This document shows, one piece after another, positions 4,625 to 58,113 of a stretch of 64,000 bases of DNA. The translations under genes were made by a program, and so were the position numbers. Below the pieces are notes generated by a model. That model ran no database searches. It saw only the letters and a program-made list of their open reading frames with translations, and had not been told where the DNA came from. The stretch comes from Phallusia mammillata (taxonomy: Eukaryota): positions 3,782,001-3,846,000 of the forward strand of contig OZ281496.1 in assembly GCA_965637545.1 (NCBI GenBank), in the 5' to 3' direction. Each line of letters begins with the position of its first letter. Positions within the stretch are counted from its first letter, which is position 1.

Positions 4625-4818
4625 ACACTCCAGGAGACAAAGATGAAGTAAATGAAGCAGCTGACAACATCTTCCACCTTGTGATGTTTGTTCCTGTGGC
4701 TACTGTAATTATCGCAGCTGGTTACCTTGTATGGGGCAAAATGGCCCAAGATGTAAAATCTAAACAAATTATCCTGCAGATAACATTTCACAATAACTTT
4801 CCGCAAATTGCATTGTAG
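4625..4818 (+). pseudogene. Orphan terminal (TM) exon of a CUB-ZP paralog of the gene-2 type
   Basis: ttgcag|AC ACT CCA GGA GAC... gives DTPGDKDEVNEAADNIFHLVMFVPVATVIIAAGYLVWGKMAQ..., matching 29509-29639. There is an L>P change in the TM, and a +1 indel moves the stop to 4816-4818. No upstream CUB/ZP exons were found in 1-4590. Confidence 0.75.
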
Positions 4819-6900: not shown

Positions 6901-9900
6901 ATGTCAAGTCGACTATTAAAAGCGGCTCTTTTTGTGAGCGCTCTGAGTATGCTCCTCCGAGGTTAGTGACTTTATTGATTTTTGTTGTGATTTCAACTTA
7001 AGTGGTATGCATGATAAGTCAAATTCTGGCAGTACGACAACATTAAGCTTTGCTGTGCGTTTTTCTGGAGGACCACGAGTACAAGCTCAGTAGAAACGAC
7101 CAAAACAGTGGTCGGCAACCGCCGGTACGCGACGAGTTCGTTATCAGGCTGTATAATCTTTAAGGTTTTAAATGGTCTAAAACATTTTGTCCATGTATCC
7201 CGGGGAATACAAACTAATTTAGGTTTTTTCATTGCCAAATATTTGTAGTTTTTTTTAAGACCGGTCCGCGATAAAACTTTAGTTTCAAAAACGGTCTGCA
7301 GTAGAGAAAAGGTTGCCGACACCTGCTCCAAAAGACATTAATGTTGTGTTGCAAATATCACGGATGTTATATAAAGGGAGCTATGGGTCCCGAGGGTTAC
7401 TTAAAGGGGTAATCGATCTATAAAAGGCTGGGAATCACTGTTCTAGTATTGAGAAATCAGAGAGAGTAACACGAGGACAAAAATTCAGGCCCCACATTGA
7501 TTAGATATAGTTTAGTATTTAAAAAAATATTTTCTACTTTAGTATTAATGCGACATCTTTAGGCGAGCATTCTTCTTGGCTAATACGTATATATCAAGGG
7601 AAATATTGGTTGTGGCCAGGAGAAGTCCTGCAAAGCATCGTTTTCAACTTGATATAGATTTTCGTTTTTTTTTAGTATCCTATAATGCCGCTTTTCGTAT
7701 TTTTTGCAGCTGAAACTGCTTCCTAGCATAATAAACAGAGTGGCAATATCCATCGTTGCGCCTTTTTTAATTTTTATGTATTTTAGTTGCACACCAACCA
7801 AGTAACATCCCACAAACCCTTTATGTCATACAACAATACCTGGTCATACGGCACAAGGGGAGACTGTCCGTTATATTGTCGAACATTGAAAGATATATTT
7901 TCGTAAATTGAAAACTTTGGAATATGTAGGCTTAAACAAGTAAATTGGGCGAAAATACGCCATGGTGGCGAACAGGCTTGTATGAGAGCTAAAGCTTGTT
8001 AAACAGCATGTTATACTGTTTTACTTAAAATGGTGCTTGTATCATTTAGTTTCCGACACACTGTGTGCAGTGGAGAATGTAAGCGGTGCTCATTATTATA
8101 CAACAATTGCCCCTAACTGTAACACATGGGCCCGACGATTTGTTTCAACTGGAGATTCTTCTCGGTTAATTGCACATTTCCGTTTGGGACAGCTTGCTGC
8201 AAACAACTTTTGCAAGGTAAAACTTTACGAACTTAGTCCTTGAAATGAGCCTAATTCGAAATTCGTCCGTTCGTTTCCGCGTAGGTTCGAATTTCATTTC
8301 TTTCAGTTAGATTTTAAATACTTTCCTAACCTTATGCGCAAATCGTGAACAAAAAACATCTAGATTTACGAGGGATCCGACGACCAAGGTAAATTAGCTG
8401 GAACGTTGGAAGGTGGAGGCTTATCTTTTCCAGTTATCGTTGAAAGTTCGTCTGCTTATATATCTTGTGTCACAGACCTCACATCGGAATCTGTGTCGTT
8501 TTGTCTACAACCATGTAAGTCAGGCTTACGATTCATTTAAAACCGAAACTTAAAGCATATATTGTAGATGAAACATGTTTTCGGGTCGATATCAGCAACA
8601 AATAAAATGATGTCAAATCTATTATTTTGCAGACATTGAAAAAAATAATAATTTGCAAACATAGTTTTAATGTAAAAAAATCGCAGTTGATGAGCACTTT
8701 TTAAACAGTGGTGATATTCCATTGCTTATCGGATCGACAACTACACATAAGTCACAGAAAATCGACAACACGATGGTCAAAACAATTGCTTGGAACTATT
8801 TTACCAGCTGTGTTGTCTCAAGCTAAACTTTTTGTGTTTTATAGTTACTTCGTGCGGGGAAGATGTTGCTGATATACCGTACAATTTACTATCTCCGATG
8901 TTTCCTGGTAACTACCCCAACCTTGCTGGTTGTATTTGGAGACTTCAAATGAATTGCAGCACAACCTTATTGTTCCAATTTTCCTCATTTGACACTGAAA
9001 CCAACTACGACATTCTATACGTAAGTGTCTTAACTTATAATATAACCTAAAAATCCAGGAGATATTGACAACGCATATAATCGAGTGGAAACGGTTTGTT
9101 ATCTGTGGGACATTTCCTGCCGCACGCACTGAAAGTAATACATGATTAAGTTTTTTTTTAAATGTATTTTAGAGTAACATATTTATTATAAACTGATTTT
9201 GCAGTGCGAAAAAGTTCACTTCTAATATTGAGGAAAGCAATAAATTTGTTTAAAGTGAAATCCTATTTTTGTTAAGCGCCTAACTAAATGATGAAAAACT
9301 TGCGGCTTTAAGAAGGTATGCGGCCTTTTATGACAAAAAGTGCGCCCCCCCTGCGGCATAATGTTAACATTCCTGAACATACGAAAAGTAACTAAATGGA
9401 GTATTGTTTTCAGTTCAAGAACGAAGAGGGTATTGTGGACAGATTTTCTGGGACGCTTCGATCATCTGATTACACGATGACAGCAACAAATCTTACTGTT
9501 GTGTTTTTGACCGACGGTAGCGGGCAATACAGAGGATTTAATGCGACAGTAGGTGAGGCAAATCTTCTTTCAGGCACACAATTTTGACATGCAAATAATA
9601 ATAATACACTTGATCTCAGCTAGCATGGGTTGTGGTACGATGTAAAAAAACTTCAATATTTATTTTAAAAACTAAGATCTAGTCAATAAGATAACACCGA
9701 ATAATTGCGACAAGTGCTATAGATTTCCTTTTGGTTTAGCTAATTACATTCTAGAGAGTTCCCCACGGGCTCTTTTGACATCAAGTTCTTATTTTTGGTT
9801 CTGTCTCACCAAATTACATCATTTTGTTAGTTCGCTGATGCCAAGCTGTACCATTTTATATGATAAAAATGCGGGGTAAATAAAATCCATTAAATTATTA

Positions 9901-12900
9901 TCACAATATAAAAGCCATGAAATGTTTGAAATAACAAATTTAATAAAAGCAATGAAATAACAAATTTAATGCGTGGAAGTAAATTTTAATCCATAAAAAG
10001 TGGACTAGTGCTCGAACTTTATTATCACGGTTTAAGAATGCTTTTTGTGTAGAAATACAACCAACTGTTGAATGTAGGACTGCAAATTTGATCATAAGGT
10101 AGGTTAATACTTTCTTTTTGATTCTTTTGTGAAATTTATTGATAATTGTTGAAAGTAATAATCAGAAGATTGTTGAAAAAATTTGAAGTATTTCAAGCAT
10201 TTTGTTGTGCTGCCTGTTTTTGTCATAAGCCTGCAATTGCTTGTTTTTCATTGATTGAGACATCTTTTACTTATCAGCAATGGGTCTTCTAATGGGATGC
10301 CGCTAGAAAAACTGCAACATAGTATAAATGTTTGGAAAATAAAAAAAATGACAGGTTGTCTAGACTTTTATAATGCCCAAAAACACGACAGTCCAATTTT
10401 CGCAGAGTAACAGCTGATCAACAGAACACATTAGATTACGAACTCGGTGACACACTTTACATCGCATTGGACAGGGAAACTCCCCTTTCTCAACTCAATA
10501 ACAGCTGCAAGGTCACGGGGTCAAACCCAGTGTTTACGTTTGACATTGGCCAATGCAAAGGTGTTTTTAAGGTAAAATTGGATTTTGTTCTGAACTCATA
10601 GACTATATGTCCTTATTATTTTTTTAGACAACATTATTCGTTAGAAGTAATAAACATTGCATGGCTAGGGGTAATAATAAAGTGCAATAAGCTTTTTATT
10701 GCTGCATAATAAAAATGAAATACCAATTTTGAAATATAATGTAATTTTCGTGCTCTTATACAGAATGAAAACGGTATGGTGTCGGTGTCTTTCCTGATCT
10801 GGAGGTTTCTAGCTCCATCCCCTGCAGTGATCCAGCGTGACGTTCAAAACAAGCTCAATGTGACTTGTTTATTTGACGCGGACCTTCTTATCGCGTCATC
10901 CAAAATTAGTACACAAATCGGGTAAAGCGACGAAAAACAAACCATTATATAACAGCTATGGAGTGGCATTCGGCACAAGACATCATGTACAAGACACACA
11001 GTAGGCGTCATAAAACGTAACACGTAGTCTTTTGTTGACATCACTTTGAAACAAATTGACACTGGGAAAACAGAAATGTTCCATATGATACAAAACATCC
11101 AACCACACCACGAATGGCATACAGCAGTTAACACATTACACACGACACAGAACACATCAATCTACCCATGGCACAAACCACATGACACGCACGACACATT
11201 TGACATGAAATACAGTAAAAGTATACCACATCTGCCACATGTAACAAGACATGCACCCAACAGCACCTGCCGCACTATGTCTGACACGCATCACAGTTTG
11301 TCTTTCCCTTTCAATTTTTATTAATCGCAAACATTTTATTTATTGTAGATCTGCCGAAATTATTGCAAAGAAAAAAGGAAGTTTGGATGTCGACCTAAAT
11401 CTCTTCAGCAACGAATATTTTACCGAAAGCTTGCCCGGAGAAGTAACTGTGCCCAACTACATTTTTGCTAAATTTAAACTAGATGGGATTTCTGTAGGCG
11501 ATGATTACTTTATTGTCCAGGTGAATTGAAAACAAAATGCTTTTAGTGCAAGAAAACACTGCATTTACTAGTTTAGTTTTTAATAGTTCTGGCATCGTTG
11601 CACTGGTTTGTAAATTGAACTGTTAAAGTGGAATACCTTTCTTACAGCTGGAAACCTGTTGGGCGACACGCAGTGGAAACTCCAATAGTTTGCCGAATTA
11701 TCAAATTGTACAAAGCGGGTAAGATATACTTGAATTACCTCAACATTTTTTTCTCGTTTGGGAGCTTATTTCTTCAATGATTAATTTTCCACACCTGTAT
11801 TTCACTCTGTTTAACTTGGAATCGAAATATTTAGATGCGTAGTGCCACCCAGTGGAGGCGAGGCTGCCAACGCTAAGACGTTGATACGAAATTACGAATC
11901 CAACTTTGCAACTTTCAAGTTGATGAGCTTTGTGTGGACAAACTTTACCGACGCAGAACAATTTATCTATATCCACTGCGACGTGACCGTCTGTCATAAT
12001 TCAACTGGACAATGCCCTGAACAGGTGAGTTGAGTTAAGTATGTTGCTTCCAAACTGGTGTGTCCTAGGTTCGCTTGCCAATACGGTATATTTTCTGACA
12101 CCAGCTGCACTCATGAGATTTTACTTGTTTAATCAGTACAAAGGCCGAGTAGTCTGGCGCGTCTGACCCAAAAAGACCTAAAAAAAACTTGATCTGGATT
12201 AGTCCCCCATCCCGCCGTCTCGGGTCCGAACCACATGATAAAAACGATGTTTACTGTCCATAGCTTACATGCAAACTAAAGAGTATTTGAACCCTCTTGT
12301 TTGGTTCAGCTGATAGAGTAATAGCACGGATAATACGCGGTGCCGTGTAGGAATGCTTGGGAGACCGGCCTTTAATCGGCCTGACGCACTGTGTTTATAT
12401 ATATGTGTGTAATTCGGTATGACGCCTTCAATAAAACTGGTGTACAATGAAATATCAATATGAGTGTAATTGTTTTGCAGACTTGTTCTGGTAAGAAACG
12501 GCGATCTGTTGAAGACAATGGTCGCCATCAACTGCTTTCTGCAGGGCCAGTGCATATCGTTCAAGGTACCGGTTATATGCACTTGCTTGGTAACGCAATT
12601 TAAACATCATTTAATCTATATTCTAGATAATATTGCTGATACACGAGCTTTTGCTAAGCAAATTTGTAGTTCTAGCAAGCAGGTCACACCTCTTGGGGCA
12701 TAATAACTTAAGTTTTCGAAATATTTTCCCCATTTATTGTACTGTGGCTTGGTGACTACTTACATAGATGTATATGTGATTAACTTGACTGGTAACATTA
12801 ACAACCGCACCTTTGTTAACTGCCTTGACTTACTTCAAAAAAAGGCTATGTTTGCATCAAAAGACACATATAAATAGGTAAATAAAATTAGACAATTACC

Positions 12901-13272
12901 TTAAAACATATTTCATGGGTTCGAATCCCATCTCTAATTTTATTTTCTTGTATCCGTTGCTGTAACAACGAGACTGGTTCGATGGCTTCTTGCAATCTTG
13001 ACATATACTGCGATTTTTATTATAGCGAACACATGACCGTTTCATGGTTGGCTACATCAATAAATAAACAATTCTTCACACATTTTGTTTTTGTTAAGCA
13101 TGACTTTTTTATCGCTTATACAACAGGAGAAAGAAACGAAGCTATAGAAGGAGTTGGCAACAGCTACCAACTTGTGATGTTTGTTCTTCTGGCTGTAATT
13201 ATTATAGGAGCTGGTTACATCGTATGGGGCAAACTGACCCAGGGTCGCAATGCGAGACAAAATCGCCAGTAA
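6901..13272 (+). CDS. CUB-CUB-ZP-TM protein (CUZD1-like architecture), gene 1, 575 aa, intact
   Basis: 13 GT-AG exons with continuous frame: 6901-6961, 8050-8216, 8364-8514, 8845-9020, 9414-9552, 10053-10098, 10406-10571, 10764-10921, 11349-11520, 11648-11718, 11835-12024, 12481-12565, 13127-13272. Signal peptide MSSRLLKAALFVSALSMLLRG. CUB motifs CGE..SPMFPGNYP...CIW and FLTDGS...GFNA. ZP-C motifs LETCWAT and YIHCDVTVC. Furin site KKRR/S, EHP LSAGPVHIV, TM LVMFVLLAVIIIGAGYIVW. Confidence 0.9.
7106..7325 (-). mobile_element. hAT (Charlie-like) MITE in intron 1
   Basis: TIRs CAGTGGTCGGCAACC / GGTTGCCGACACCTG with a degenerate TSD (gaccaaaa/ctccaaaa). The reverse complement matches 45432-45665; the orthologous copy is at 33758-34415. 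Confidence 0.75.
12143..12244 (+). mobile_element. Short tRNA-derived SINE (older copy) in intron 11
   Basis: GGCCGAGTAGTCTGGCGCGTCTGAC...GGGTCCGAACC...AAAA. Same family as 39231-39349 and 39928-40017. Confidence 0.55.
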
Positions 13273-23139: not shown

Positions 23140-26100
23140 ATGTCAATCAGGCTGATAAAGGTTGCTCTTTTCGTCTGCTCTATGAGTTTATTACATCGAG
23201 GTAAGTAATTTTAAAACATAGCCAGTCGAAAGTAATTGTTCTAATGGCGGCATACAAAACTTACAAACTTCATAGACTTAGATGACATTTTACTGCAATG
23301 TATCAAATAAAGCCCTAATTGTGTAAGTTTAAATATTGCATTTGCACGAACAGCTTTGAGTTGTTTGCGACGAGCTTCAAAATATGGTTTCCCGTCATTT
23401 AAAACAAGGTTAAAAAACAAATTTTAATCATTTTCGAACTATTGAAATCAAACAAATACTTTGACAAAACCATTTTATTAGGGTCTTATGGGCTCGGTGT
23501 AAAATATTGTTCCAGTTAACTGGTAAAACATATTCACCAGGCTTAAAATAGCGACGCAAAGTTGCGATGTCATAAACCGCGAGAAAGCGGATGGCACATT
23601 GGCGGAAATATAAAAAAAACGCGCTGCAGCTATGCCGAACTCTCTATGTAGCAGCTTATTGGTGTCAGGATTGTAAAGGGATGCTCGATTGTTAAAATTT
23701 ATTTTTCTGATGGTCAATTTCATATTAAGTGTCGGACGGTCAGTGTCACGACGGGGATGTAACTACAATTCACTTTTCTGACAACATTTTACCTGAATGT
23801 ACCACATATACTCGCCGCTTTATCCACGATCAGGGTTCCACAAGATTGGTTACTTATTTTCGAAGAGGAGAGCTAGCTGCAGACAACTTTTGTGAGGTAA
23901 AGTCTTATGAGTATAGCTTTCGACTTCGGTACATAAGATTTTGTTGGTTTGGTTCTTTTTTAACCTCTAGGGTGGAGGTCACGCACACAGTAAGTCTGCA
24001 TCGTATTGCTAGTTGTTAGTTACTTTATTTGTTGATATTTTTTTTATCAAAACAGGTTCACACGTGTACGCATATAACATCTTTTCTTCGATTCGACTTG
24101 AGTAACGAACCAAAATCTATTTTTTAAACTATTTTAACTCGATTTGTGGTTTGTTTCAAATCCATGGATTAAAAAAATACTTTGGAATGTTGTAGATTTA
24201 TTATGATTGGGAGTTGTTCTTGAAACAAAGTTGTTTTGGGAACAAATTTGGACTGGTTTTAACCAAAAGGGCTCATTTTTTGCCTGACTTTCTACTCGGC
24301 TACATTTGCTGCGTTTTTTTCGAGTTGGTTAAACGAACGGGTTTTCTTTTAAAAAGTTCGGGTTTGGCGTTTAGGGCTCAGACGTTCGGGCTCGGTAACA
24401 ACTCGTAATAAAACTAATTGCCACTAATGTGCAAATTTTGAGCATTATCCTCATTCTGTTTAATCTAGATTTACGAGGGATCCGACGACCAAGGTACATT
24501 GGCTGGAACGTTGGAAGGTGGAGGCTTATCTTTTCCGGTTTTCGTTGAAAGCTCGTCTGCTTATATATCATGTGTCACAAACCTCACAACGGGAACTGCA
24601 AAAATTCTTATGCACGCTGGTAAGTCACATCTATAAGTTTTCTCAAAATTTGGGCTTTTTAGGTGATAAGTAAGCTGCAGTCAGAGCGTCACTTTCGTTC
24701 TGTATCATCTCATCAGTGAAATGGTGACAAAAAATTGAGTGTGCAAATTCTTGCAGCCAGACTGTGTTGCGTTTCATGAGTAAGAGGTCAAAAGTAACTG
24801 CACAGAAACCAAATTTGTTTTACCAGCCGGACTGTCTGCAGCTAAACTAACAAACAATTAACGCCTTTTGTGTATTTTAGCTACTTTGTGCGGGGAAGAT
24901 GCTACAGGACCGATATATAATTTACAGTCTCCTAACTTTCCAAATAACTACCCAGCTACGGCTGGTTGTGTTTGGAGATTTCGCATGGAAAGCAGCACGT
25001 CCTTGGTGTTTCAATTCTCCACTTTTACAATCGAAAATAACTTTGACCTTTTATACGTAAGTGAGTGGTTATTTCTTTTTAAATTACATTGCAGAACCAA
25101 AACGGACCGAACCAGGTTTTAATCTTGTTTCGAGTTAACATTTTACAACATAATAATTTTTGGCAATGTAAAAAAACATAAGGACACACGGTGGCTGAGA
25201 TGGCAGTCAGGTCCAAATCAAACATATTTTGTTGAAACAAAAGTCGTACCTAAGCCGAAAAGCCTGGCTCTACATAAAACTTTCATTTGAACCAGGAGTG
25301 CACAACAAACAAATCCGTTCTAACGTTGCATAAAAATCTAGAAAACAATCTCTTTTATAGAGATTAATTTGAGGGCAATCATGTCCTAAATATTTAGGAC
25401 GCCATCATCTACATTGCACGTTGTACGTTGGTTTATTCAGTATTTGTACCCAATGATTAATAAGCAATGATTAATATGGTTACTAAGCAGGTAACAAATC
25501 TTTCCAGCCCCACGAAACCCAGTCCGAGCGGTTTTCCAACCTTAATTTCTAAAATAAGGCATAATCCATTAACACCCACTGTACATGTATTTTTGCGGCC
25601 TCATACTTTTGTCAGTTCTGCCGCGCCTTATGCACCCCCGATTTAAACCAGAATTTGTTTACACTTGTTGACTGGTGCGACATTATTTTCAGTTCAAAGA
25701 CGATCAAGGAAATGTAGAAAGATTGACTGGGAATTATGATGGAGGATTGAATCACACAGTTACTGCAACAAATCTTACTCTTATCTTTATCAGCGATACT
25801 GACGGAGCTGAGCAGGGATTTAATGCAACAGTCAACCTTCCATCAGGTTAGTGCAATTTGTTTTCAAAAGACAACAGACAAAAACGCAAATCTTACAATG
25901 AAAATGTTGGGTACATTTTCAAAAGTTTATACGGATGGAAATCATTTTAAACTTTGCGATTTACTCTCCATGCAAATCAGATTATTTTTAATTGATTTGT
26001 ACCATGTCATGTTGGTTATTTGTCGTTTTCTTAATTAAGTGGCATAATTTGTATGTTGTGGAAAAAGGAAAACAAAACCCATCAGGTCCATTTTATGGGT

Positions 26101-29100
26101 AACGACAATAAATTATGTTTTGAAACACTTGGTGGAATATGATGAAGCAAAATTTTATCTATCCAATGCAGCAAAGTAATCGTTGTTTTGTTCGAAAGTG
26201 TAAGCTAACCGTAAGTAATGCAATGTTTTTTGTAGGATCGCAACAATCAACGATGGTTTGTCAGACCGAAGGTTTGACCCTACCGTAAGTTCTTTTTTAG
26301 TGTTTAGGTTAACATTAAATAATCCTTAAGAAATATATAATGATTTTAGAATTTTTGTGGGGGGATGGCGTTTTTAGACATTGCACAAAGAAGTCGTTTG
26401 TGCAAAAGAAATATAGGCACCATCACAGGAATAAATAAGTAAGAAGTGGGTAATAATTTGACATGTCTGAAATTAATATTTCAAATTGCAGTTAATTTAG
26501 GTTGCACATTGAAAAGTGCGCATACATATAAATCTATTGAAATGTCACCGCTATATAATACCTGTTACAGCCACCGTTCTGCGCTTGATAACGTTTTGTC
26601 GGTACCAAGCTGGTTTTAAAGCAATTGTGTCTCTACAAGTGTTCTCTTCCCAAGCGATCAAAGAAAAAATTAACGCAACCCAACAACAAAAATAAGATTA
26701 CCTTCTAAACAGTGTTGTTAATGTAGTAGGCAGTTTCTTTGAAGATGCTGCATTAAAAGTGTTGTTGCTCTACAAAAACTCTAATGTCCAATATTCGCAG
26801 GGTTACGCCTGATGAACAGAACACATTGGACTACGAACTCGGTGACACTCTTTACATCGCATTAGACAGGGAAACTCCCCTTTTACAACTCAATGACAAC
26901 TGCAAGGTCACGGGGTCAGATCCGGTGTTCGTGTTTGACATTGGTCAGTGTGAAGGTGCCTACAAGGTAACATGCGATTTTATATATTAATGGTGTATAA
27001 AAAGATTGACAACGCTTAAACAAATCATCGGTTACATTTTAACAACGAAAAAGGATAGTTAGCAACGACCAAATGTGTTAAAATTTATCGCACCAAATAA
27101 AATAAAGTATTAAGATAGATTTGTTTAGTAAACTTTGTTGCGGTCGTATAAAAAATGATTACGTACATTTTTGTATTAACAGAATGAGAACGATATGGTG
27201 TCGGTGTCTTTTCTGATCTGGAGATTTTTAGCTCCATCCCCTGCCGTGGTCCAACGCGACATTCAAAACAAGCTCAATATGACTTGTCTATTTGAAGCCG
27301 ATCAAGTTCTCTCGTCATCTAATGTCCAACCACAAGTCGGGTAAGTGGACAATAAGGGCACATGCCATATGTTACACGGCAAACGACATCAGTTGGTAAT
27401 TGTTTCAATGGACAATGTTAGTTTTATCATCACTAGTACTAGCCAAACATTATGAAAAGTAACCAATAAAAACAAGAAAATGAAACTATAGTTCTAAATC
27501 CCTATAGAAATATGTTTAATTTTCTTCGAAATAACAATGTGCAGATCCGTTGAAATTTCGGCCGAGAATACAGGAAACTTTGACGTCGCTCTAAATCTTT
27601 TTACAAACGAACATTTCAACGAAAGCTTGTCTGGGGAAGTCACTGTGCCCAACTACATATTTGCTGAAGTTAAACTTGAAGAAGTTTCTCCAAGCAACGA
27701 TGACTTCATTGTCCAGGTAAATCATTAAGGCAACAAAGGTTACTAAATTGTAGTTCGCGTTTTGTAGAAAATGCACATTACAGTCGTTGCATTATTTTGT
27801 GTGTGACGTTATCCATCTTCTTGAGTAAAGATTTTAAAACTGTAAAACACTTTTGAGTTTTTATTCCCATGTTAAGTATTTAAGCATCATTTAGGTGCTA
27901 TAGGGGTTGCACATTTGATTTCATTACAATTTTGTATACAGCTTGAAGAATGTTGGGTAACACGCGTTGAAAACTCTGGTGGTTTGCCGAACTACCCTGT
28001 TGTAGTAAGCGGGTAAGCAGTACTTGTATTGGATTTGTAGTGTGCACTCTTGCTTTTCATAAAACTGAACGGCACACTGTTTTAGCCTTGCGTAAATTTG
28101 TGCCAATATGAGTAGATGTGTTGCGCCACCCAGTGGAGGCGAGGCTGCCGACGCGAAAATGTTGATCAGAAATTACCAAGCCAACTTTGCAACGTTCAAG
28201 CTGATGAGCTTTGTGTGGACAAACTTTACCGATGCAGAACAATTTATCTACATTTACTGCGACGTGACCATTTGTCAAAACTCAACTGGACAATGCCCTG
28301 GACAGGTGAGTTGAGTTTGTTTGCTCCGTTAGATTCAAAATAAGTCGGCCGTCGAGCTGCCCACATCATTGCAAGTAAAGTGGATTATATTTGATTGATT
28401 TATACGTCAATAAATTTGCTTTATTAAATTAACAGAGAAAAAACACGATATGTCTGAGTTTTTTCAGATTACATTTAGCTGCTTTATTTATTCTTAATAA
28501 TATTTATATACATCAAAAAAATTATAAATATTAAACTTATTTGCAGATGTGTGGTGGGAAAAAAAGACGGTCTGTTGACAACAATGGACGCAGCCAACGA
28601 CTTTCTGCAGGGCCAGTGCACATCTTACAAACTACCAAGTATCTTCTTATGCAAGGTACCAACACAATAGTTAAACTCTTCTTTCCTATATATTAACTTT
28701 GTTCAGGGCAAAATACTGCAGTTGCCTGTGTTTTAACTACTCAAATCATTGCATTTATCAACTAAAACCCTTGGGGACATATTTACTTAAGCTATATTAG
28801 ACCTCAATTATCAAACATTTCGCTTGTTTCTTTGTCTAAAATTACTGCGCCTTAAAGTGAATTTGTTTGTTTGTTTTATTTAATCCTCGATGGGCCGACA
28901 ACGCCTGAATGCGTTAACTAACAGTCAGTCCACGGTCGAGCTGCCTGAATTGTTGCAACTCAGTTGAATATTTATTATTTGAGACTTATAGGGGACGTTA
29001 ATGTAGTGCAACCCTTCGGGTTTCAGTGGGTTAGAGCAATTCCAAAGTTTTTTGCCCAGGGAAACACAAGCTGCCGAAACAGTATTAGAACCCACAAGCG

Positions 29101-31599: not shown

Positions 31600-32226
31600 T
31601 TTGTGCGAGCTTCTTTCTTAGCAAATACGTTTATATCAACGAAAATACTGGTTGTGGTTAGGAGAAGTGGTGCTAAGCACAGTTTTCAACTTGATATAGA
31701 TTTTCGTTTTTTTATGAACCATGAAGAACAAAACTAATGTTCAGATACTATCTTGGAATGGCAATATGTTGTATTGTTTTTGCAACTCAAACTGTTTCCT
31801 GGCATAATAAACAAAGTGGTAATATACATATTTGTTTTTGTGTGGTTCAGTTGTACACCCACCAAGTAGCATCCCGCAAACTCTTTACGTCGCGCAGCAA
31901 TAGCTTGTTCTACGGCAAATAAAATGCGTTATATTTTCGAACATCAAAAGATGTATTTTCGTAAGTTGGTATATGTTGGTTTAAACCACCAAATTGGGCG
32001 AAAGATGCCATTGTGGCAACTCTGGTACAGGATGTATGGGAGCATAAGCTTGTTATACTGTTTTACTTTTAAATGGGGCTTGTATTATTTGGTTTCAGAA
32101 ACATTGTATGCAGTGCATAATGTAAACGGTCGTTCATATTATTTAACAATTTCCCCCGACTTTAAGTCCTGGGTCCGACGATTTGTTTCAACTGGAGTTT
32201 CCTCTCGGTTAATTGACTATTTCCGT
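31600..32226 (+). pseudogene. Remnant of CUB-ZP intron 1 (3' part) plus truncated exon 2
   Basis: VSETLYAVHNVNGRSYYLTISPDFKSWVRRFVSTGVSSRLIDYFR aligns to gene-1 exon 2. The acceptor is changed AG>GG (tatttgg), two Cys are lost, there is no exon 1, and it is truncated at ~32226. Confidence 0.75.
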
Positions 32227-33757
32227 TGCGACGGAAAACGAAAACGTTTGTTGTAGTTGTTTTAAAACTTTTTTCCTGGTGTCAGATATAACGCGCAATT
32301 TTGATAACTGTCAACGGCTATTCTCATTCATTACGTTTCCTGTTTCCGAATTAAGCTTTAACAACTTAATTATTACGACATAGCATTTATTTCAATAATG
32401 ATTTCCAGCATCATGAATTCAACAAGTGAAACTTTTATTTGTAATTAACAACAAACGGCTATTTTTTGATTAAGTAACAACAAACAAACTAATACTGACG
32501 TGCGACATACAACAATAAGTTCCGTATGAGATTGGATCAAAGAATAATAAACTTTTGGCCAGTGGAAACACGTTAATGGAAGATTAAATTGAAATGGAAA
32601 ATCATTTCATGAACTAACAAACATTTCCCTCATACTTTTTGTTTATATTTAACAACGTTTCACTACATAATATTTAATTTGTTTCTACTTTGTCTACACG
32701 CACACTTTGTCTAGATTTAACTTTTCCCAAAACGTACCACTACTTTTGTTTACTTAATTAACTACTCTCTCGCACCAGTGATTTTGACGTCGTCGCGCCT
32801 GCACGTTTGTGATTGGCCGGAAAGATCATGTTACTTTTGACCTGGCGTATTGTGTGCTATATTTAGGGCAGTTCTTGCCTGGACCTTGTGGTGTTTAGAG
32901 CGTTCGCATTTTAGCTGCAAAGCATGACGGTGTTGTGTTGTAACATATTGAAACTTTGGAGATAGCCAACGTCATTTCAATTTCATTTTTATTATTTATA
33001 TTAAACTTGTATTAGTTGTTCGGTGTGAACATTACACCTTTGTCTTTAGCAGTAAGCTGTCAGTGCAGGAGAAATCTAGTAAGTTAAAGGCGGTGATCCG
33101 CTATAATAGTGGATAGGGTTGTGTAAGCTTACTTTGTTCAGTCAAAGTTAACCACCTCGCCTTTCCTTAAATTCCTAGGTCAAATCCGGGTTCACCTAAC
33201 TAATTTCGGTTACAATTATGCCGATTTTTTATATTTTTACCTGAATCAAATGGTATTTCGGTGGCGTTGTAAATGACAAAAATGTTTGCTTGTGCTGGGA
33301 AAGTCTCTGGCAGGTTGACCGAACGTCAATTTACCAGTTTGATTGCTTCCTCTTGTATTTGAGCTGTAACTGTGTCGTCATTGGCGTCGCTTTGCAAATA
33401 GGCGCTTGGTAAATAAATGTCAGGCAATATTGAGAAGTTTCATCTTTCCAACCGGAGTGCCGCTATACCCTTATGTGACACGTTTGTTGCAGGGGGTGCA
33501 GACTTCATGTGGTTAGTGATATTGCTGTTAAAAATATATCTCCAAAGTAAAAATGTCAAGTCGACTATTAAAAGCGGCTCTTTTTGTGAGCGCTCTGAGT
33601 ATGCTCCACCGAGGTTAGTGCATTCATTGATTTTTGTTGTGATTTCAACTTAAGTGGTATGCATGATAAGTCAAATTCTGGCAGTACGATAAAATTAAGC
33701 TTTGCTGTGCGGTTTTCTGGAGGACCACGAGTAAAAGCTCAGTAGAAACGACCAAAA

Positions 33758-35204: not shown

Positions 35205-38200
35205 GTTTATATCAAGGGAAATATTGGTTGTGGCCAGGAGAAGTCCTGCAAAGCATCGTTTTCAACTTGATATAGATTTTTTTTAGTATCCTATAATGCC
35301 GCTTTTCGTATTTTTAGTATCCTATAATGCCGCAGCTGAAACTGCTTCCTAGCATAATAAACAGAGTGGCAATATCCATCGTTGCGCCTCTTTTAATTTT
35401 TATGTATTTTAGTTGTACACCAACCAAGTAACATCCCACAAACCCTTTATGTCATATAACAATACCTTGTCATACGGCACAAGGGGAGACTGTCCGTTAT
35501 ATTGTCGAACATTCAAGATATATTTTCGTAAATTGAAAACTTTGGAATATGTAGGCTTAAACAACTAAATTGGGCGAAAATACGCCATGGTGGCGAACAG
35601 GCTTGTATGAGAGCTAAAGCTTGTTAAACAGCTTGTTATACTGTTTTACTTAAAATGGTGCTTGTATCATTTAGTTTCCGACACACTGTGTGCAGTGGAG
35701 AATGTAAGCGGTGCTTATTATTATACAACAATTGCCCCTAACTGTAACACATGGGCCCGACGATTTGTTTCAACTGGAGATTCTTCTCGGTTAATTGCAC
35801 ATTTCCGTTTGGGACAGCTTGCTGCAAACAACTTTTGCAAGGTAAAACTTTACGAACTTTGTCCTTGAAATGAGCTCAATTCGAAATTCGTCCGTTCGTT
35901 TCCGCGTAGGTTCGAATTTCATTTCTTTCAGTTAAATTTTAAATACTTTCCTCACCTTATGCGCAAATCGTGAACAAAAAACATCTAGATTTACGAGGGA
36001 TCCGACGACCAAGGTAAATTAGCTGGAACGTTGGAAGGTGGAGGCTTATCTTTTCCGGTTATCGTTGAAAGTTCGTCTGCTTATATATCTTGTGTCACAG
36101 ACCTTACGACGGAATCTGTGTCGTTTCGTCTACAACCATGTAAGTAAGGCTTACGATTCATTTAAAACCGAAACTTGAAGCATATATTGTAGATAAAACA
36201 TGTTTTCGGGTCGATATCAGCAACAAATAAAATGATGTCAAATCTATTATTTTGCAGACTTTGAAAAAAATAATAATTTGCAAACACAGTTTTAATGTAA
36301 AAAAATCGTAGTTTATGAGCACTTTTTAAACAGTGGTGATATTCCATTGCTTATCGGATCGACAACTACACATAAGTCACAGAAAATCGACAACACGATG
36401 GTCAAAACAATTGCTTGGAACTATTTTACCAGCTGCGTTGTCTCAAGCTAAACGTTTTGTGCTGTTTAGTTACGTCGTGCGGGGAAGATGTTGAAGATAT
36501 ACCGTACAATTTACTCTCTCCAATGTTTCCTAGTAACTACCCCAACTTTGCTGGTTGTGTTTGGAGATTTCAAATGAATAGCAGCACAACCTTAGTGTTC
36601 CAATTCTCTACATTTAACACTGAGGGCGAATCCGACATTCTTTACGTAAGTGTCTTAACGTATAATATAACCTAATTTAAGGGTTCCAACAGAGGAAATC
36701 CAGAGATTGCGTGCAAAATGAGGGTAGTGTGGACAAAATATTTTTTTCTCTCTCATTATTTAACATGGTAATATTGTCGACGCAAATAATCGAGTGGAAA
36801 CGGTTTGGTATCTTTAGGAGATTTCTTGCAATACGCACTGAATTAATATGTGGCCCTCTGCGGCTAAATGTTAGCATTTCTGATCAAACCAAATATAAAT
36901 AAATACCGTATTGTTTTCAGTTCAAGAACGAAGAAGGTAATGTGGACAAATTTTCTGGGTCGCTTGGGTCATTTAACTACACGGTGACTTCATCAAATCT
37001 CACTGTCATGTTTGAGAGCGACGATAGCGTGCTAAGAGTCGGATTTAATGCCAAAGTAGGTGAGGCAAATCTCCTTTCAGGCACAAAATGTCGACATGCA
37101 AATGATAAAAATACACTTAAGCTCAGCCAGGATGGGTTGTAGGTTCACGATGGTCTGTAAAAAAAACTTCTTTGTGATTTAAACTAAAATCTAACTAATA
37201 AGATAGCAACGAAAATTTTTTGACTCCTTTTACTGCATTGCGACAAGTGCTTTAAATTCCTTTTAGATCAGCTAATTAGAATCTAGAGAGTTCCCAACAA
37301 GCTATTTTGACATCAAGTTCTTTTTTTTTGGTCCTGTCTCACCAAATTACATCGTTTAGTTCGATGCCAAGTTGTAACATTTTATATGATAAAATACGGG
37401 GTAGGTAAAATCCATTAAATTAATATCACAATATAAAGGCAATGAAAGGTCTAAAATAACAAATTTAATATTCAAAAGTAAATTTTAATCCACAAAAGGT
37501 TGAAAAATGCTTTATTTATACTTTATTTAATTTTTTTTATACCGTAGAAATACAACCATCTGTTGAATGTAGGACTGAAAATTTGATCATCAGGTAGGTT
37601 AATATTTTCTTTTTGATTCGTAAGTGAAAATTATTGATGCTTTTTGAAAGTCTTTTATAATCAAAAGGTTATTGAAAAAAATTCTTTATTGATTGAGACA
37701 TCTTTTACTTCTCAGTTTTCAATGGGTCTTCTAATGGGATGCGGCGATAAAAACAGCAATATAGTATAAATGTTTGAAAAGTAAGCAAAAAAAGAACAGG
37801 TTGTCTAGACTTTTATAGTGTACAAAAACTTAGCAGTGTAATCTTCGCAGAGTAACAGCTGATCAACAGAACACATTAGATTACGAACTCGGTGACACGC
37901 TTTTCATCGCATTGGACAGGGAAACTCCCCTTTCTCGACTCAATAACAACTGCAAAGTCACGGGGTCAAACCCAGTGTTTACCTTTGACATTGGCCAATG
38001 CAAAGGTGCTTTTAAGGTACAGTTGGATTTTTTTTCCAAACACATAGAAAGTTTGTCCTTATTATTTTTAGAAAACATTAGCTATTAGAACCAATTAACA
38101 ATACATAGTTAGGTATAATGATAAGTGTTATAATCTTTTTCTTGCTGCATAATAAAAAACTGCCAATTTTGAAATATAATGTAATTTTCCTGCTAATATA

Positions 38201-39349: not shown

Positions 39350-39927
39350 TATTTCACTGTGCTTAACTTTGCATCGAAACTTTTAAATGCGTTGCGCCAC
39401 TCAGTGGAAGCGAGTCCGCCGAGGCGAAGATTTTGATCCGAAACTACGAATCCAACTTTGCAAACTTTCAAGCTGATGAGCTTTGTGTGGTCAAACTTTA
39501 CTGACGCAGAACAATTTATCTACATCCACTGCGACGTGACCGTCTGTTATAATTCAACTGGACAGGTGAGTTGAGTTGACCGTATTTAGGACTTGTGATA
39601 GAGATTACAGTTTACCAAGAAATGTTAGTCAAAAAATATAAGAAGGTGTAGGAATATCGGTTTTAGTGATATCAGTTTTTTCTAAACCAACAAAACCACT
39701 GTATATTGCTAAACCACAGTGAACTTATAACGATATATCTTTATAGATAAACTAAAGAATTTCATAGGCGTTTATGGCCAGTTGTGACATTAAAAAGATT
39801 TAGTGAGGCGCGGTTTTATAGTCTGTTGCACCCAACTAACTGGAGTGTCCTAGGTTCGCTTGTCATTACGGTATATTTTCTGTCAACAGTTGCACTCATA
39901 AGATTTTATATGGCAAACCAGTGCAAA

Positions 39928-40017
39928 GGCCGAATGGTATGGCGAGCCTCACCCATATAAAGACATAAAATAATTTGATCGGGATTCGTTCCCTCGGGTT
40001 CGAACCACATGAAAAAT
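39928..40017 (+). mobile_element. tRNA-derived SINE, ortholog of 12143-12244
   Basis: GGCCGAATGGTATGGCG...GGGTTCGAACCACATGAAAAA. Confidence 0.55.
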
Positions 40018-41860
40018 AACGATGTTTATTGTCCGTAGCTTATATACAAACTAAAGAGTATTTAAACCCTCTTGTATGGTTCAGCTGATAGGGTAATAGC
40101 ACGGAAAATACGCCGTGCCGTGGAGGAATGCTTGGGAGACCGGCCCTTAATCGGCCTGGCGCACTATGGATTATATATATGTGTGCCGTGATCGCCTTAA
40201 TTCGGTATGACGCCTTTAATAAGACTGGTGTACGATGAAATATCAATATTAGTATAATTGTTTTGTAGTCTTGTTCTGGTAAGAAACGACGATCTGTTGA
40301 AGACAATGGTCGCAATCAACTACTTTCTGCAGGGCCAGTGCACATTGTAGTTTTCGAAATATCTTCCCCTTGTATAGTACTATGTCTTGCTGACTACTTA
40401 CGTATATGTTCATGCGATGAACTTGACTGGTAACAATCCCACCTTTTATTTAATTTTCATGGAAGGGCACATATGAAAGGTAAATAAAACAATAATTATC
40501 GTAAAACATATTTCATGGGTTCGAATCCCATCACTAATTTTCTTTTTCTTGTATCCGTTGCTTTAACAACCAGACCGATTCGCTGGCCTCTTGCAATCTT
40601 GACATATACTGCGACTTTCATGGGTATAACCAACACATGTCCGCTTCAGTGCTGACTACATCGATATATAAGCAGTTATTTACCTATTTTTATCGTTTTT
40701 TTGTTAAGCATGACCTTTTTTTTATCTGTTATACAACAGAAGAAAGAAACGAAGCTATAGAAGGTGCTGGCAACAGCTACCAACTTGTGATGTTTGTTCT
40801 TCTGGCTGTAATTATTATCGGAGCTGGTTACATCGTATGGGGCAAACTGAACCAGGATCGCAATGCGAGACAAAATCGACTGTAGATAAATGTTTTAGTA
40901 TTCTCATCATGGCTTGTTAATCTGCATTTAAAAGCTATTGCCTTTGAAGATCAAAAAACAAATAACAAATTAAAGCTGTTTTTCATAGGGCTGTTTGTTA
41001 GTTTAGTTATCAAATAAATATTATGCATCAATTCACTTATTACATGCTTCATTCATAGCTGACATGAAATTACTTTGTCAAAGTATTGTCGTGTTTCCGT
41101 TTAACTGTTGTATACAATATAATCAGATGGGCCTTTGAATCCTTTGAATTAGCTGATATCATGAGTCAGAAAAAAACATTTTTAAATATTTTAGCGTGGT
41201 AGCCTGTGTTGACCGAGGATATATTGGCCTTTAAATCTCATTTATGGTAATTAATTCAACACAAACAAAACCCATACCACCGTCCTCAAAAAGGCTTATT
41301 GTCTAGAAGTCACCAACACTATGCCCGTTAGACTAATTCTTAAAAGAGCCGGTTGTGCCTCCAGTTTACACAATAGGCTACGCCTCATGACGATTCTTTT
41401 TAAAGTGGTGCAATAGGTTTATCTAACCATGGACAATTAATACTTAACAAAGCATTATGTAACAATCATGGAATTCGACTGTTACGTCATACGCGCTATA
41501 ATAAATGGCAGTTGGTGAACAAAGTGGTACCTGGAATGCTAAACTGATGTAACACATTTTGATTGTGACACATTGCAAGATGAAATAATAAGCCACACTA
41601 GAGAAAAGAGTACCGGAAGTCAATCGGGAAAAACTTCTCAAAAATTCAAACTAATAAACATTCCGTTATTCCCGATTTATGGAGATTTATTAATTGATTG
41701 GTTAGTTTCATGCCTCAGGAAATACAATTTGTTCCCAAAATATTACAGAAAGCAAAATGTCGCATGTGCTGCAAAATTCCAAAACTGATCGGTATTTGCG
41801 AAATTAGGTAATGATGTAGAATAACGTTTTGTACAAATTTACAGTCTATGAGCCTTGGAA

Positions 41861-57913: not shown

Positions 57914-58113
57914 NNNNNNNNNNNNNNNNNNNNNNNNNNNNNNNNNNNNNNNNNNNNNNNNNNNNNNNNNNNNNNNNNNNNNNNNNNNNNNNNNNNNNNN
58001 NNNNNNNNNNNNNNNNNNNNNNNNNNNNNNNNNNNNNNNNNNNNNNNNNNNNNNNNNNNNNNNNNNNNNNNNNNNNNNNNNNNNNNNNNNNNNNNNNNNN
58101 NNNNNNNNNNNNN
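57914..58113. other. Assembly gap (200 N)
   Basis: Run of N. Confidence 1.

Follow-up and report, generated by a model that had tools for sequence, protein, structure and literature searches.

The 64,000-nucleotide window analyzed here (Phallusia mammillata, contig OZ281496.1, positions 3,782,001 to 3,846,000 of the forward strand) consists of AT-rich eukaryotic DNA with short introns and harbors gene 1, a predicted member of a tandem family of membrane-anchored proteins with a CUZD1-like layout. Its product carries two N-terminal head domains, the second of which, CUB2, contains two loops (L5 and L9) at a predicted calcium site. Within CUB2, these loops were found to be hypervariable throughout the family and to change faster than neighboring introns and adjacent synonymous sites, and the ZP exons tested gave no such signal. 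To account for these results, three causes are proposed to act together, namely a recent conversion or duplication tract ending at the start of exon 4, ZP-N exons kept similar by purifying selection, and diversifying selection acting on the loops. The probability of this explanation is estimated at roughly 0.6.

Domain Architecture of Gene 1

Self-comparison of the window revealed three tandem paralogs on the + strand, namely gene 1 (~6.9–13.3 kb), gene 2 (23.1–29.6 kb) and gene 3 (33.5–40.9 kb). The following features of gene 1 are referred to below (coordinates are those of the window):

6901..13272, + strand: gene 1, 12 coding exons, intact, 559 amino acids
N-terminal start of the layout: predicted signal peptide
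Exons 2-3: Cys-rich N-terminal domain, named CUB1 by an earlier sequence-only reading of this DNA
Exons 4-5: CUB2
8845..9020, + strand: exon 4, first half of CUB2 (codon 1 from 8847; 58 codons)
9414..9552, + strand: exon 5, second half of CUB2 (46 codons plus 1 base)
Exons 6-10: ZP module
Exon 11: putative furin-type cleavage site KKRR, read as GKKRRS in the translation
Exon 12: predicted transmembrane helix, 21-residue hydrophobic stretch VMFVLLAVIIIGAGYIVWGKL

In this model, all introns show the AG...GT pattern and the reading frame is open throughout. Pfam was run exon by exon with a cut-off of 21.4 bits. Exon 4 matched the CUB family PF00431 with 33.9 bits (E = 4e-8, hidden Markov model (HMM) positions 1-58), exon 5 matched the same family with 22.4 bits (E = 1.6e-4, HMM positions 67-109), and exon 10 matched ZP-C (PF00100) with 29.8 bits (E = 7.5e-7). 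Exons 6 and 7 gave no Pfam match when searched singly; their position and Cys pattern fit ZP-N. The closest solved structure for exon 4 is that of cubilin CUB6 (3KQ4), and CUB2 is devoid of the second disulfide.

The exon numbering of the sequence-only reading had to be revised in part, as its exons 7 and 8 correspond to exons 6 and 7 of the present model and its exon 6 was not found. Searches of intron 5 of genes 1, 2 and 3 by means of blastn-short and tblastx detected no conserved exon between exon 5 and the next. The additional exon was rejected on this result, and the splice phases work without it.

In a PDB sequence search with exon 5, antibody light chains outranked CUB structures (E = 0.001-0.3). 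The stretch concerned, residues 6-27 (window 9429-9494; GIVDRFSGTLRSSDYTMTATNL), is similar to framework 3 of antibody light chains (GxxDRFSG...D[YF]T[LM]T). The resemblance was rejected as probably due to chance or to convergent beta-strand similarity.

Hypervariable Loops at the Predicted Calcium Site of CUB2

The residues and loops of gene 1 CUB2 considered in the following are:

8913-8915, + strand: Y23 (exon 4), invariant Tyr of the calcium-CUB motif
8922-8924, + strand: L26 (exon 4), hypervariable (L/Y/F/D/T), in the preceding odd-numbered loop
8991..9011, + strand: loop L5 (exon 4), D49-T50-E51-T52-N53-Y54-D55
8997-8999 and 9009-9011: E51 and D55, predicted calcium ligands in L5, aligning with Glu and Asp of the cubilin and enteropeptidase CUBs
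9513..9533, + strand: loop L9 (exon 5), comprising D34 (9513-9515), a predicted calcium ligand, and the hypervariable residues G35-R40 (9516-9533)

The ligand position of D34 was deduced from the Pfam register and the known consensus. Y23, E51, D55 and D34 are present in genes 1, 2 and 3, and the loop motifs which the sequence-only reading had listed for genes 1, 3 and 2, respectively (TETNYD/TEGESD/IENNFD in L5; TDGSGQYR/SDDSVLRV/SDTDGAEQ in L9), are correct.

Comparison of 22 distinct CUB2 sequences showed a conserved framework, with variation residing in two loops of fixed length. No variation was observed at Tyr23, Asp55 and the exon-5 residue Asp34. L5 follows the pattern F-x-T-[E/Q/K]-x-x-x-D and occurs in 10 variants, including TETNYD, TELNYD, TEGESD, TQSAYD and TENCCD; its hypervariable residues are 49, 52, 53 and 54. 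For L9, 16 variants of the pattern S-D-xxxxxx-G-F-N-A-T-V were found, always with six residues between the invariant SD and GFNATV. At the nucleotide level, framework sequence identical over ~100 nt lies beside loops differing at 7-16 of 27 nt. Moreover, the L5 loop TETNYD was found together with four different L9 loops (GSGQYR, LSGQRK, ESESST and LSTTRA). In ligand-bound structures of tandem CUB domains, L5 and L9 carry the calcium ligands and constitute the ligand site (PMC8051872). By analogy with these solved calcium-CUB complexes, L5 and L9 of CUB2 may form a ligand-contact face.

Loop Divergence Exceeds Local Neutral Yardsticks

Searching the genome (240 Mb) with the exon-4 peptide gave at least 124 matches, 79 of which are located in C3:2.94-5.21 Mb, often within near-identical blocks in both orientations. 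The family occupies ~2.3 Mb of the chromosome. In total, 30 loci of 3.2 kb and 20 loci of 9 kb were analyzed. Three copies with an unusual exon 5 (L039, L014 and L015, described below) were left out of the exon-5 tests.

Parsimony counts on per-exon trees yielded ratios of nonsynonymous to synonymous divergence (dN/dS) of 0.58-0.85 for the head exons versus 0.31-0.41 for the ZP exons. Sites changing above neutral expectation (Poisson p < 0.01) were confined to exons 2-5, and none were detected in ZP exons. Each of the L9 codons accumulated 10-14 nonsynonymous changes versus ~3.4 expected, and exon-4 site 26 accumulated 11 versus 3.8 expected.

As a local yardstick, flanking introns within 200 bp were used. 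In pairs at an intron divergence (p) of ~0.05, the proportion of nonsynonymous differences (pN) amounted to 0.32-0.33 in the loops and to 0.04-0.05 in the framework, for which the synonymous proportion (pS) was 0.07-0.14. Among seven non-overlapping pairs, L9 differed at 45 of 96 nonsynonymous sites versus 410 of 2669 intron sites (ratio 3.05, p = 1e-12). For L5, the same pairs gave 17/51 versus 279/2313 (ratio 2.8, p = 8e-5), with synonymous differences at 0/12 sites. In the four closest independent pairs, L9 showed 18.5 nonsynonymous versus 0.5 synonymous differences (p ~0.002-0.02).

By-site tests were run as a comparison of the codon models M1a and M2a, using our own maximum likelihood (ML) code with F3x4 codon frequencies, a fixed FastTree topology, scaled (proportional) branch lengths and naive empirical Bayes (NEB) posteriors. 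Both CUB2 exons were significant and the ZP exons were null, as is apparent from the likelihood ratio test (LRT) statistics:

Exon 4: LRT 15.7, p = 4e-4, omega2 3.5, sites 26, 42, 49, 52, 53
Exon 5: LRT 75.1, p = 5e-17, omega2 8.0, sites 35, 37-40
Exon 2: LRT 13.7, p = 1e-3, omega2 3.3, sites 8, 14, 18, 28, 44, 45
Exon 3: LRT 53.6, p = 2e-12, omega2 6.9, sites 41, 43, 45, 47, 49, 50
ZP exons 6, 7, 8, 10: LRT 0-1.7, not significant

The omegas obtained under M0 agree with the counting estimates. Posterior probabilities of omega > 1 reached 0.94-1.0 at exon-4 sites 49, 52 and 53, 0.93-0.99 at exon-4 site 26, and at least 0.999 at exon-5 sites 35, 37, 38, 39 and 40. Furthermore, a harder null was applied in which a third class of codons is fast but neutral (rate r, omega = 1). 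This null was rejected for exon 4 (omega2 3.46, r = 1, p = 0.0026) and exon 3 (p = 0.003), and marginally for exon 2 (p = 0.045). With lesion-free copies, exon 4 gave an LRT of 17.8 and p = 0.0015 against the fast-neutral null.

Since the loops outpace local neutral yardsticks, short-range change is almost entirely at the amino-acid level and the ZP exons are null, the results favor diversifying selection at the face predicted to contact the ligand. Such rates would be expected if every copy were selected for a partner of its own.

The Gene 1/Gene 3 Contrast and Its Tract Boundary

The hypothesis of a hypervariable CUB2 originated from the comparison of genes 1 and 3, for which the following values were obtained:

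Exon 1: 98.4% nucleotide identity
Exon 2: 1/56 residues differ, 99.4% nucleotide identity
Exon 3: 2/50 residues differ, 96.7% nucleotide identity
Exon 4: 12/58 residues differ, 87.5% nucleotide identity, dN/dS 0.45, dS 0.24
Exon 5: 18/46 residues differ, 80.0% nucleotide identity, dN/dS 0.84, dS 0.29
Exon 6 (exon 7 of the sequence-only reading): 4/55 residues differ, 95.7% nucleotide identity
Exon 7 (formerly exon 8): 5/53 residues differ, 93.0% nucleotide identity
Exon 8: 83.7% nucleotide identity, dS 0.42
Exons 9, 10, 11, 12: 88.7, 89.3, 93.7, 95.1% nucleotide identity

All residue differences counted by hand in the earlier work were reproduced, and so was the number of exon-5 codons with synonymous change only, which is exactly 5. 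Differences are significantly enriched in CUB2 (30/104 residues versus 12/214 in exons 2, 3, 6 and 7; Fisher p = 4e-8). Inside CUB2, 8 of 9 loop codons, which had been fixed beforehand from the calcium ligands, differ versus 22 of 95 other codons (p = 2e-4).

The introns place this excess in context. Divergence (K) between genes 1 and 3 amounts to 0.035-0.037 in introns 1-3 and to 0.196, 0.176, 0.21, 0.24, 0.14, 0.14 and 0.17 in introns 4, 5, 6, 8, 9, 10 and 11, respectively. On the gene 1 side, the high-identity tract (K ~0.035) extends from ~6055 to intron 3. Based on sliding identity, per-segment K and mismatch positions, its 3' edge was mapped as follows:

8811..8870 (approximate), + strand: 3' edge of the gene 1/gene 3 high-identity tract

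The step in K at exon 4 therefore points to the end of a recent conversion or duplication tract that spans the region between the promoter and intron 3, inclusive. Exons 6 and 7 (omega 0.24-0.37, within diverged introns) appear close because of purifying selection. Total divergence of exon 5 (0.255) is slightly above that of the adjacent introns (0.18-0.20). Much of the gene 1/gene 3 contrast is thus attributable to the recent tract and to purifying selection on the ZP-N exons. Genes 1 and 3 are close paralogs, as had been stated, from the promoter to intron 3, but not in introns 4-11 (K 0.14-0.24) or exons 8-10 (84-89% identity). Likewise, the CUB2 island is a significant excess but in part the edge of the tract. 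The per-exon check that had been envisaged gave values below 1 for both CUB2 exons, and a whole-exon dN/dS above 1 was not found for this pair. By itself, the gene 1/gene 3 pair does not show diversifying selection.

The corresponding features of the two paralogs in the window are:

36470-36645 and 36921-37059, + strand: gene 3 CUB2, exons 4 and 5
24881-25056 and 25693-25846, + strand: gene 2 CUB2, exons 4 and 5, loops IENNFD and TDGAEQ

Gene 3 carries several lesions (window 39387-40353). At exon 10, the acceptor is changed from AG to AA and the coding sequence is frameshifted and interrupted by stops; the donor region of exon 11 has been lost by deletion. L042, a twin copy of gene 3, shows the same lesions. 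An exon-2-like remnant at window 32093-32227, 1.3 kb upstream of gene 3 exon 1, is 81.6% identical to gene 1 exon 2 and fits a replacement of the gene 3 5' end. The gene 1-like 5' module is common to L033, L041, L044 and L045 at 98-99%.

Proposed Explanation and Competing Accounts

According to the proposed explanation, a recent conversion or duplication tract would run from the promoter through intron 3 and end at the start of exon 4. Downstream of it, purifying selection on ZP-N exons 6-7 would give rise to their apparent closeness despite diverged introns. Family-wide, hypervariability would reside in L5 (between Glu51 and Asp55, together with residue 49) and L9 (the six residues past Asp34), and position 26 in a neighboring loop would also vary. 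Selection would favor new or different loop sequences, with loop length, calcium ligands and beta framework kept constant. Through recombination at the scale of exons and gene conversion between paralogs, L5, L9 and the N-terminal head would be brought together in many combinations, and the ZP stalk would polymerize and display the heads. Diversifying or balancing selection is considered the more probable cause of loop diversity. The deep synonymous divergence of L9 fits loop lineages maintained over long periods beside a homogenized framework, as is the case at balanced loci.

Several observations weigh against this explanation. The acidic ligand residues, reported as kept by the sequence-only reading, are indeed kept in the three genes of the window, but Glu51 is replaced by Q or K in 3 of the 22 distinct CUB2 sequences. 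Whole-exon dN/dS between genes 1 and 3 stays below 1 in exons 4 and 5. Exon 5 does not reject the fast-neutral null (r = 4.9, omega2 = 1.7, p = 0.11), and M2a is outperformed by a model in which ~11% of codons evolve 5-7 times faster at omega = 1. The lesion-free copies behave similarly (LRT 35; omega2 = 2.0, p = 0.14 versus the fast-neutral null). Synonymous divergence of the exon-5 loop is also high, so that omega no longer exceeds 1 significantly when the model admits a fast neutral class, and the L9 signal could represent old sequence that escaped homogenization. In addition, rampant recombination inflates the LRTs of site models. In the home-made ML code, the topology was fixed to that of FastTree, branch lengths were proportional and posteriors were of the NEB type. 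The dataset includes several copies that are pseudogenes or of unsettled status, and alleles and paralogs are inseparable in this assembly. Accordingly, the earlier suggestion of diversifying selection on a ligand-binding surface is supported in part, by the family-wide loop rates and M2a, but neither by the gene 1/gene 3 pair alone nor by the exon-5 tests against the fast-neutral null (p = 0.11-0.14).

The most serious competitor, although rather unlikely, is a neutral mosaic in which the loops are unconstrained and gene conversion homogenizes the remaining sequence, so that the loops keep deep sequence or receive short conversion patches. Such an account is in line with the fivefold step in background divergence at exon 4, with the exon-scale mosaics encountered everywhere, and with the raised synonymous change in L9 (18 changes on ~4 synonymous sites in tree counts). 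It also agrees with the exon-5 result, where the fast-neutral class beats M2a and omega2 is not significantly above 1. However, the loops evolve 3 times faster than introns within 200 bp and 5-9 times faster than adjacent synonymous sites. Differences between the closest pairs are almost exclusively nonsynonymous (18.5 versus 0.5 in L9), and those in L5 entirely so (17 versus 0); furthermore, the exon-4 sites reject the fast-neutral null. Unselected conversion patches would not match two structural loops in many independent pairs, the ZP exons are under the same recombination without showing a signal, and the constant loop length argues against a lack of constraint. A still less likely possibility is that many of the "paralogs" represent allelic haplotypes or false duplicates laid in series, in which case the variation would be allelic polymorphism, perhaps under balancing selection. 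Blocks with exons 97-100% identical do recur every ~100-270 kb in both orientations. Gene 1 and L031 have the same exon sequences and differ by a 109-bp intron indel, and high synonymous divergence is tightly linked to the loops, as in long-term balanced alleles. Nevertheless, the window contains three clearly different tandem genes and the end of a fourth, lesions and head-module numbers differ among copies, and 79 matches in 2.3 Mb far exceed two haplotypes. This account would alter the identity of the copies, not the hypervariability of the loops.

Relaxed selection on pseudogenic gene 3 alone, which the sequence-only reading had offered as an alternative source of the gene 1/gene 3 CUB2 differences, is very improbable. 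Gene 3 is broken at the exon-10 acceptor, by the frameshift and stops, and at the exon-11 donor. However, the intact-looking copy L044, in which all 12 exons are open, carries a gene 3-type CUB2 (99.4% nucleotide identity in exon 4 and 100% in exon 5), and the CUB2 of L041 is 98-99% identical to that of gene 3. Decay of gene 3 therefore does not explain the differences. Polarization within the family places derived states on both lineages, with gene 1 showing minority states at exon-4 positions 21, 30, 33, 37 and 47 and exon-5 positions 7, 10, 16, 18, 22 and 33. Moreover, the signal persists when lesion-bearing copies are removed, and decay would not be loop-specific. Taken together, selection for loop diversity beside a tract edge and constrained ZP-N exons remains the preferred explanation.

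Mosaic Structure and Variant Copies of the Family

Mapping of individual exons revealed that exon-scale mosaics are pervasive among the copies. In L033, exons 1-3 are 99% gene 1/gene 3-like, exon 4 is 96.6% gene 1-like and exon 5 reaches 87%. L037 combines gene 1-like exons 4-5 with gene 3-like exons 6-9 and gene 1-like exons 10-12. One head-exon type occurs together with four CUB2 types. Exon 5 is the most divergent exon in most family comparisons; for most paralogs, nucleotide identity to gene 1 is 76-87% in exon 5, 85-97% in exon 4 and 90-96% in exon 6. Lesion-bearing copies comprise gene 3 and L042, L033-36, and the L039 type.

At the tandem acceptor of exon 6, cagAG is replaced by cagGG in gene 2 (window 26795-26805) and at least five other copies, including L033-L036 and L038, the exons being otherwise open. 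Use of the remaining AG shifts the frame, and a stop would follow one codon past CUB2 (L033, L038) or 20 codons on (gene 2). The frame-shifted copies would encode a soluble two-head protein devoid of ZP module and transmembrane helix. They may be pseudogenes or secreted variants.

Some paralogs, namely L046 and L047 (C3:4582426-4591426 and 3431328-3440328, respectively) as well as L027 and L028, possess two consecutive exon 2-5 sets and a further exon-5-like piece upstream, so that at least four head domains precede the ZP module. Family members thus differ in how many head modules they carry. In L039, L014 and L015, the first 20 codons of exon 5 are in a shifted frame (FSSRTKKVMWTNLLGRLGRL...) and return to frame before L9, representing either a compensating frameshift pair or a pseudogene.

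N-Terminal Head and Remaining Features of the Window

The designation of the first head as a CUB domain was not confirmed. Exons 2 and 3 gave no Pfam match at E <= 1, hhalign comparison of the exon 2-3 families with the CUB2 exon families yielded probabilities below 2%, and PDB profile searches with the first-head exons returned nothing relevant. The four-Cys spacing, C-x-W and IYEG-type motifs are the sole hints of a CUB fold in these exons. At the exon level, a CUB identity of the first head is thus suggested by these motifs but by none of the searches.

The N-terminal domain contains variable patches at exon-2 residues 13-18 and 44 and at exon-3 residues 41-50 (window 8050-8216 and 8484-8514), for which the site models gave omega2 values of 3.3-6.9. 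Residues 41-50 of exon 3 vary in an alternating i, i+2 pattern, and the first 40 residues of this exon are nearly invariant throughout the family. CUB2 is therefore not the sole variable part of the protein.

Outside the three genes, two further features were noted:

4654-4748: homologue of the last (transmembrane) exon, belonging to a fourth copy, the rest of which lies upstream of the window start
57914-58113: run of 200 N (assembly gap or masked sequence)

Significance

CUB domains are known as conserved single-partner modules for calcium-mediated ligand binding. We know of no described family that diversifies precisely the calcium-site loops of this domain, across dozens of tandem copies and on a ZP stalk predicted to polymerize. 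Among invertebrates, ascidians stand closest to the vertebrates, and their self-sterility and allorecognition are well studied. If the selection proposed here is true, the family would constitute an ascidian recognition repertoire on a scaffold not known for such a role. The finding offers concrete targets, namely some ten codons, loops whose length is defined, and loops naturally exchanged between frameworks that are nearly the same, which could help to show whether egg-coat or mucosal ZP proteins hold their specificity in the heads. If only neutral mosaicism applies, the family would represent a clean case of gene-conversion boundaries mimicking "hypervariable islands". The present work places the variability of CUB2 in the loops at its calcium site, uses introns as a yardstick, maps the tract boundary, and applies site-class tests in which ZP exons serve as controls.

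As a tentative and rather doubtful extension, the 2.3-Mb array may be a germline-encoded variable recognition system with the calcium-CUB as diversified binding scaffold. In it, dozens of ZP-polymerizing proteins would each present their own combination of L5, L9 and N-terminal head, arising through exon shuffling and with its diversity maintained by selection. Possible roles would be self/non-self or species recognition at the egg coat, or microbe binding on a mucosal or tunic surface. Soluble two-head forms might be contributed by copies carrying the GG acceptor.

Comparison with Known Systems

The architecture resembles that of CUZD1 in its signal peptide, two N-terminal heads, ZP module, basic cleavage site and C-terminal transmembrane helix. 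However, CUZD1 is a single-copy gene, whereas the present family numbers dozens to more than 100 copies, and its first head is without a CUB match at the exon level. To our knowledge, hypervariable calcium-site loops have not been reported for CUZD1. When exon 4 was searched against 1.84 billion representative proteins, the matches were confined to generic multi-CUB proteins of 44% identity or less; "CUZD1-like" is therefore used as an architecture label only.

CUB2 shares the Tyr, Glu, Asp, Asp pattern with ligand-recognizing calcium CUBs such as cubilin CUB5-8, MASP, C1r/C1s, PCPE-1 and neuropilin (Gaboriaud et al. 2011, cited in PMC8051872). In CUBs of the cubilin/MASP type, the loops are conserved for one partner, whereas in the present family they are the most variable part of the protein, the hypervariable residues being located in L5 and L9, the ligand-bearing loops.

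Among ascidians, Ciona is reported to have individually variable, highly polymorphic ZP-domain proteins in its follicle cells and oocytes, proposed as fertilization or allorecognition molecules (Kurn et al. 2007, as described in PMC8849226). Like the members of the present family, they are ascidian ZP-domain proteins. The self-sterility genes established for Ciona, the s/v-Themis pairs, do not encode ZP proteins. Literature searches turned up no description of an ascidian CUB-ZP family.

Recognition multigene families combining hypervariable binding loops with gene conversion include the peptide-binding codons of the MHC, the FREPs of snails and the VCBPs of amphioxus. The present family differs from them in its scaffold, a CUB domain on a ZP stalk. 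It resembles them in its birth-and-death tandem arrays with pseudogenes, in homogenized frameworks with diversified contact residues (here those of the predicted ligand face), in raised synonymous divergence beside the sites proposed to be selected, and in the reshuffling of modules.

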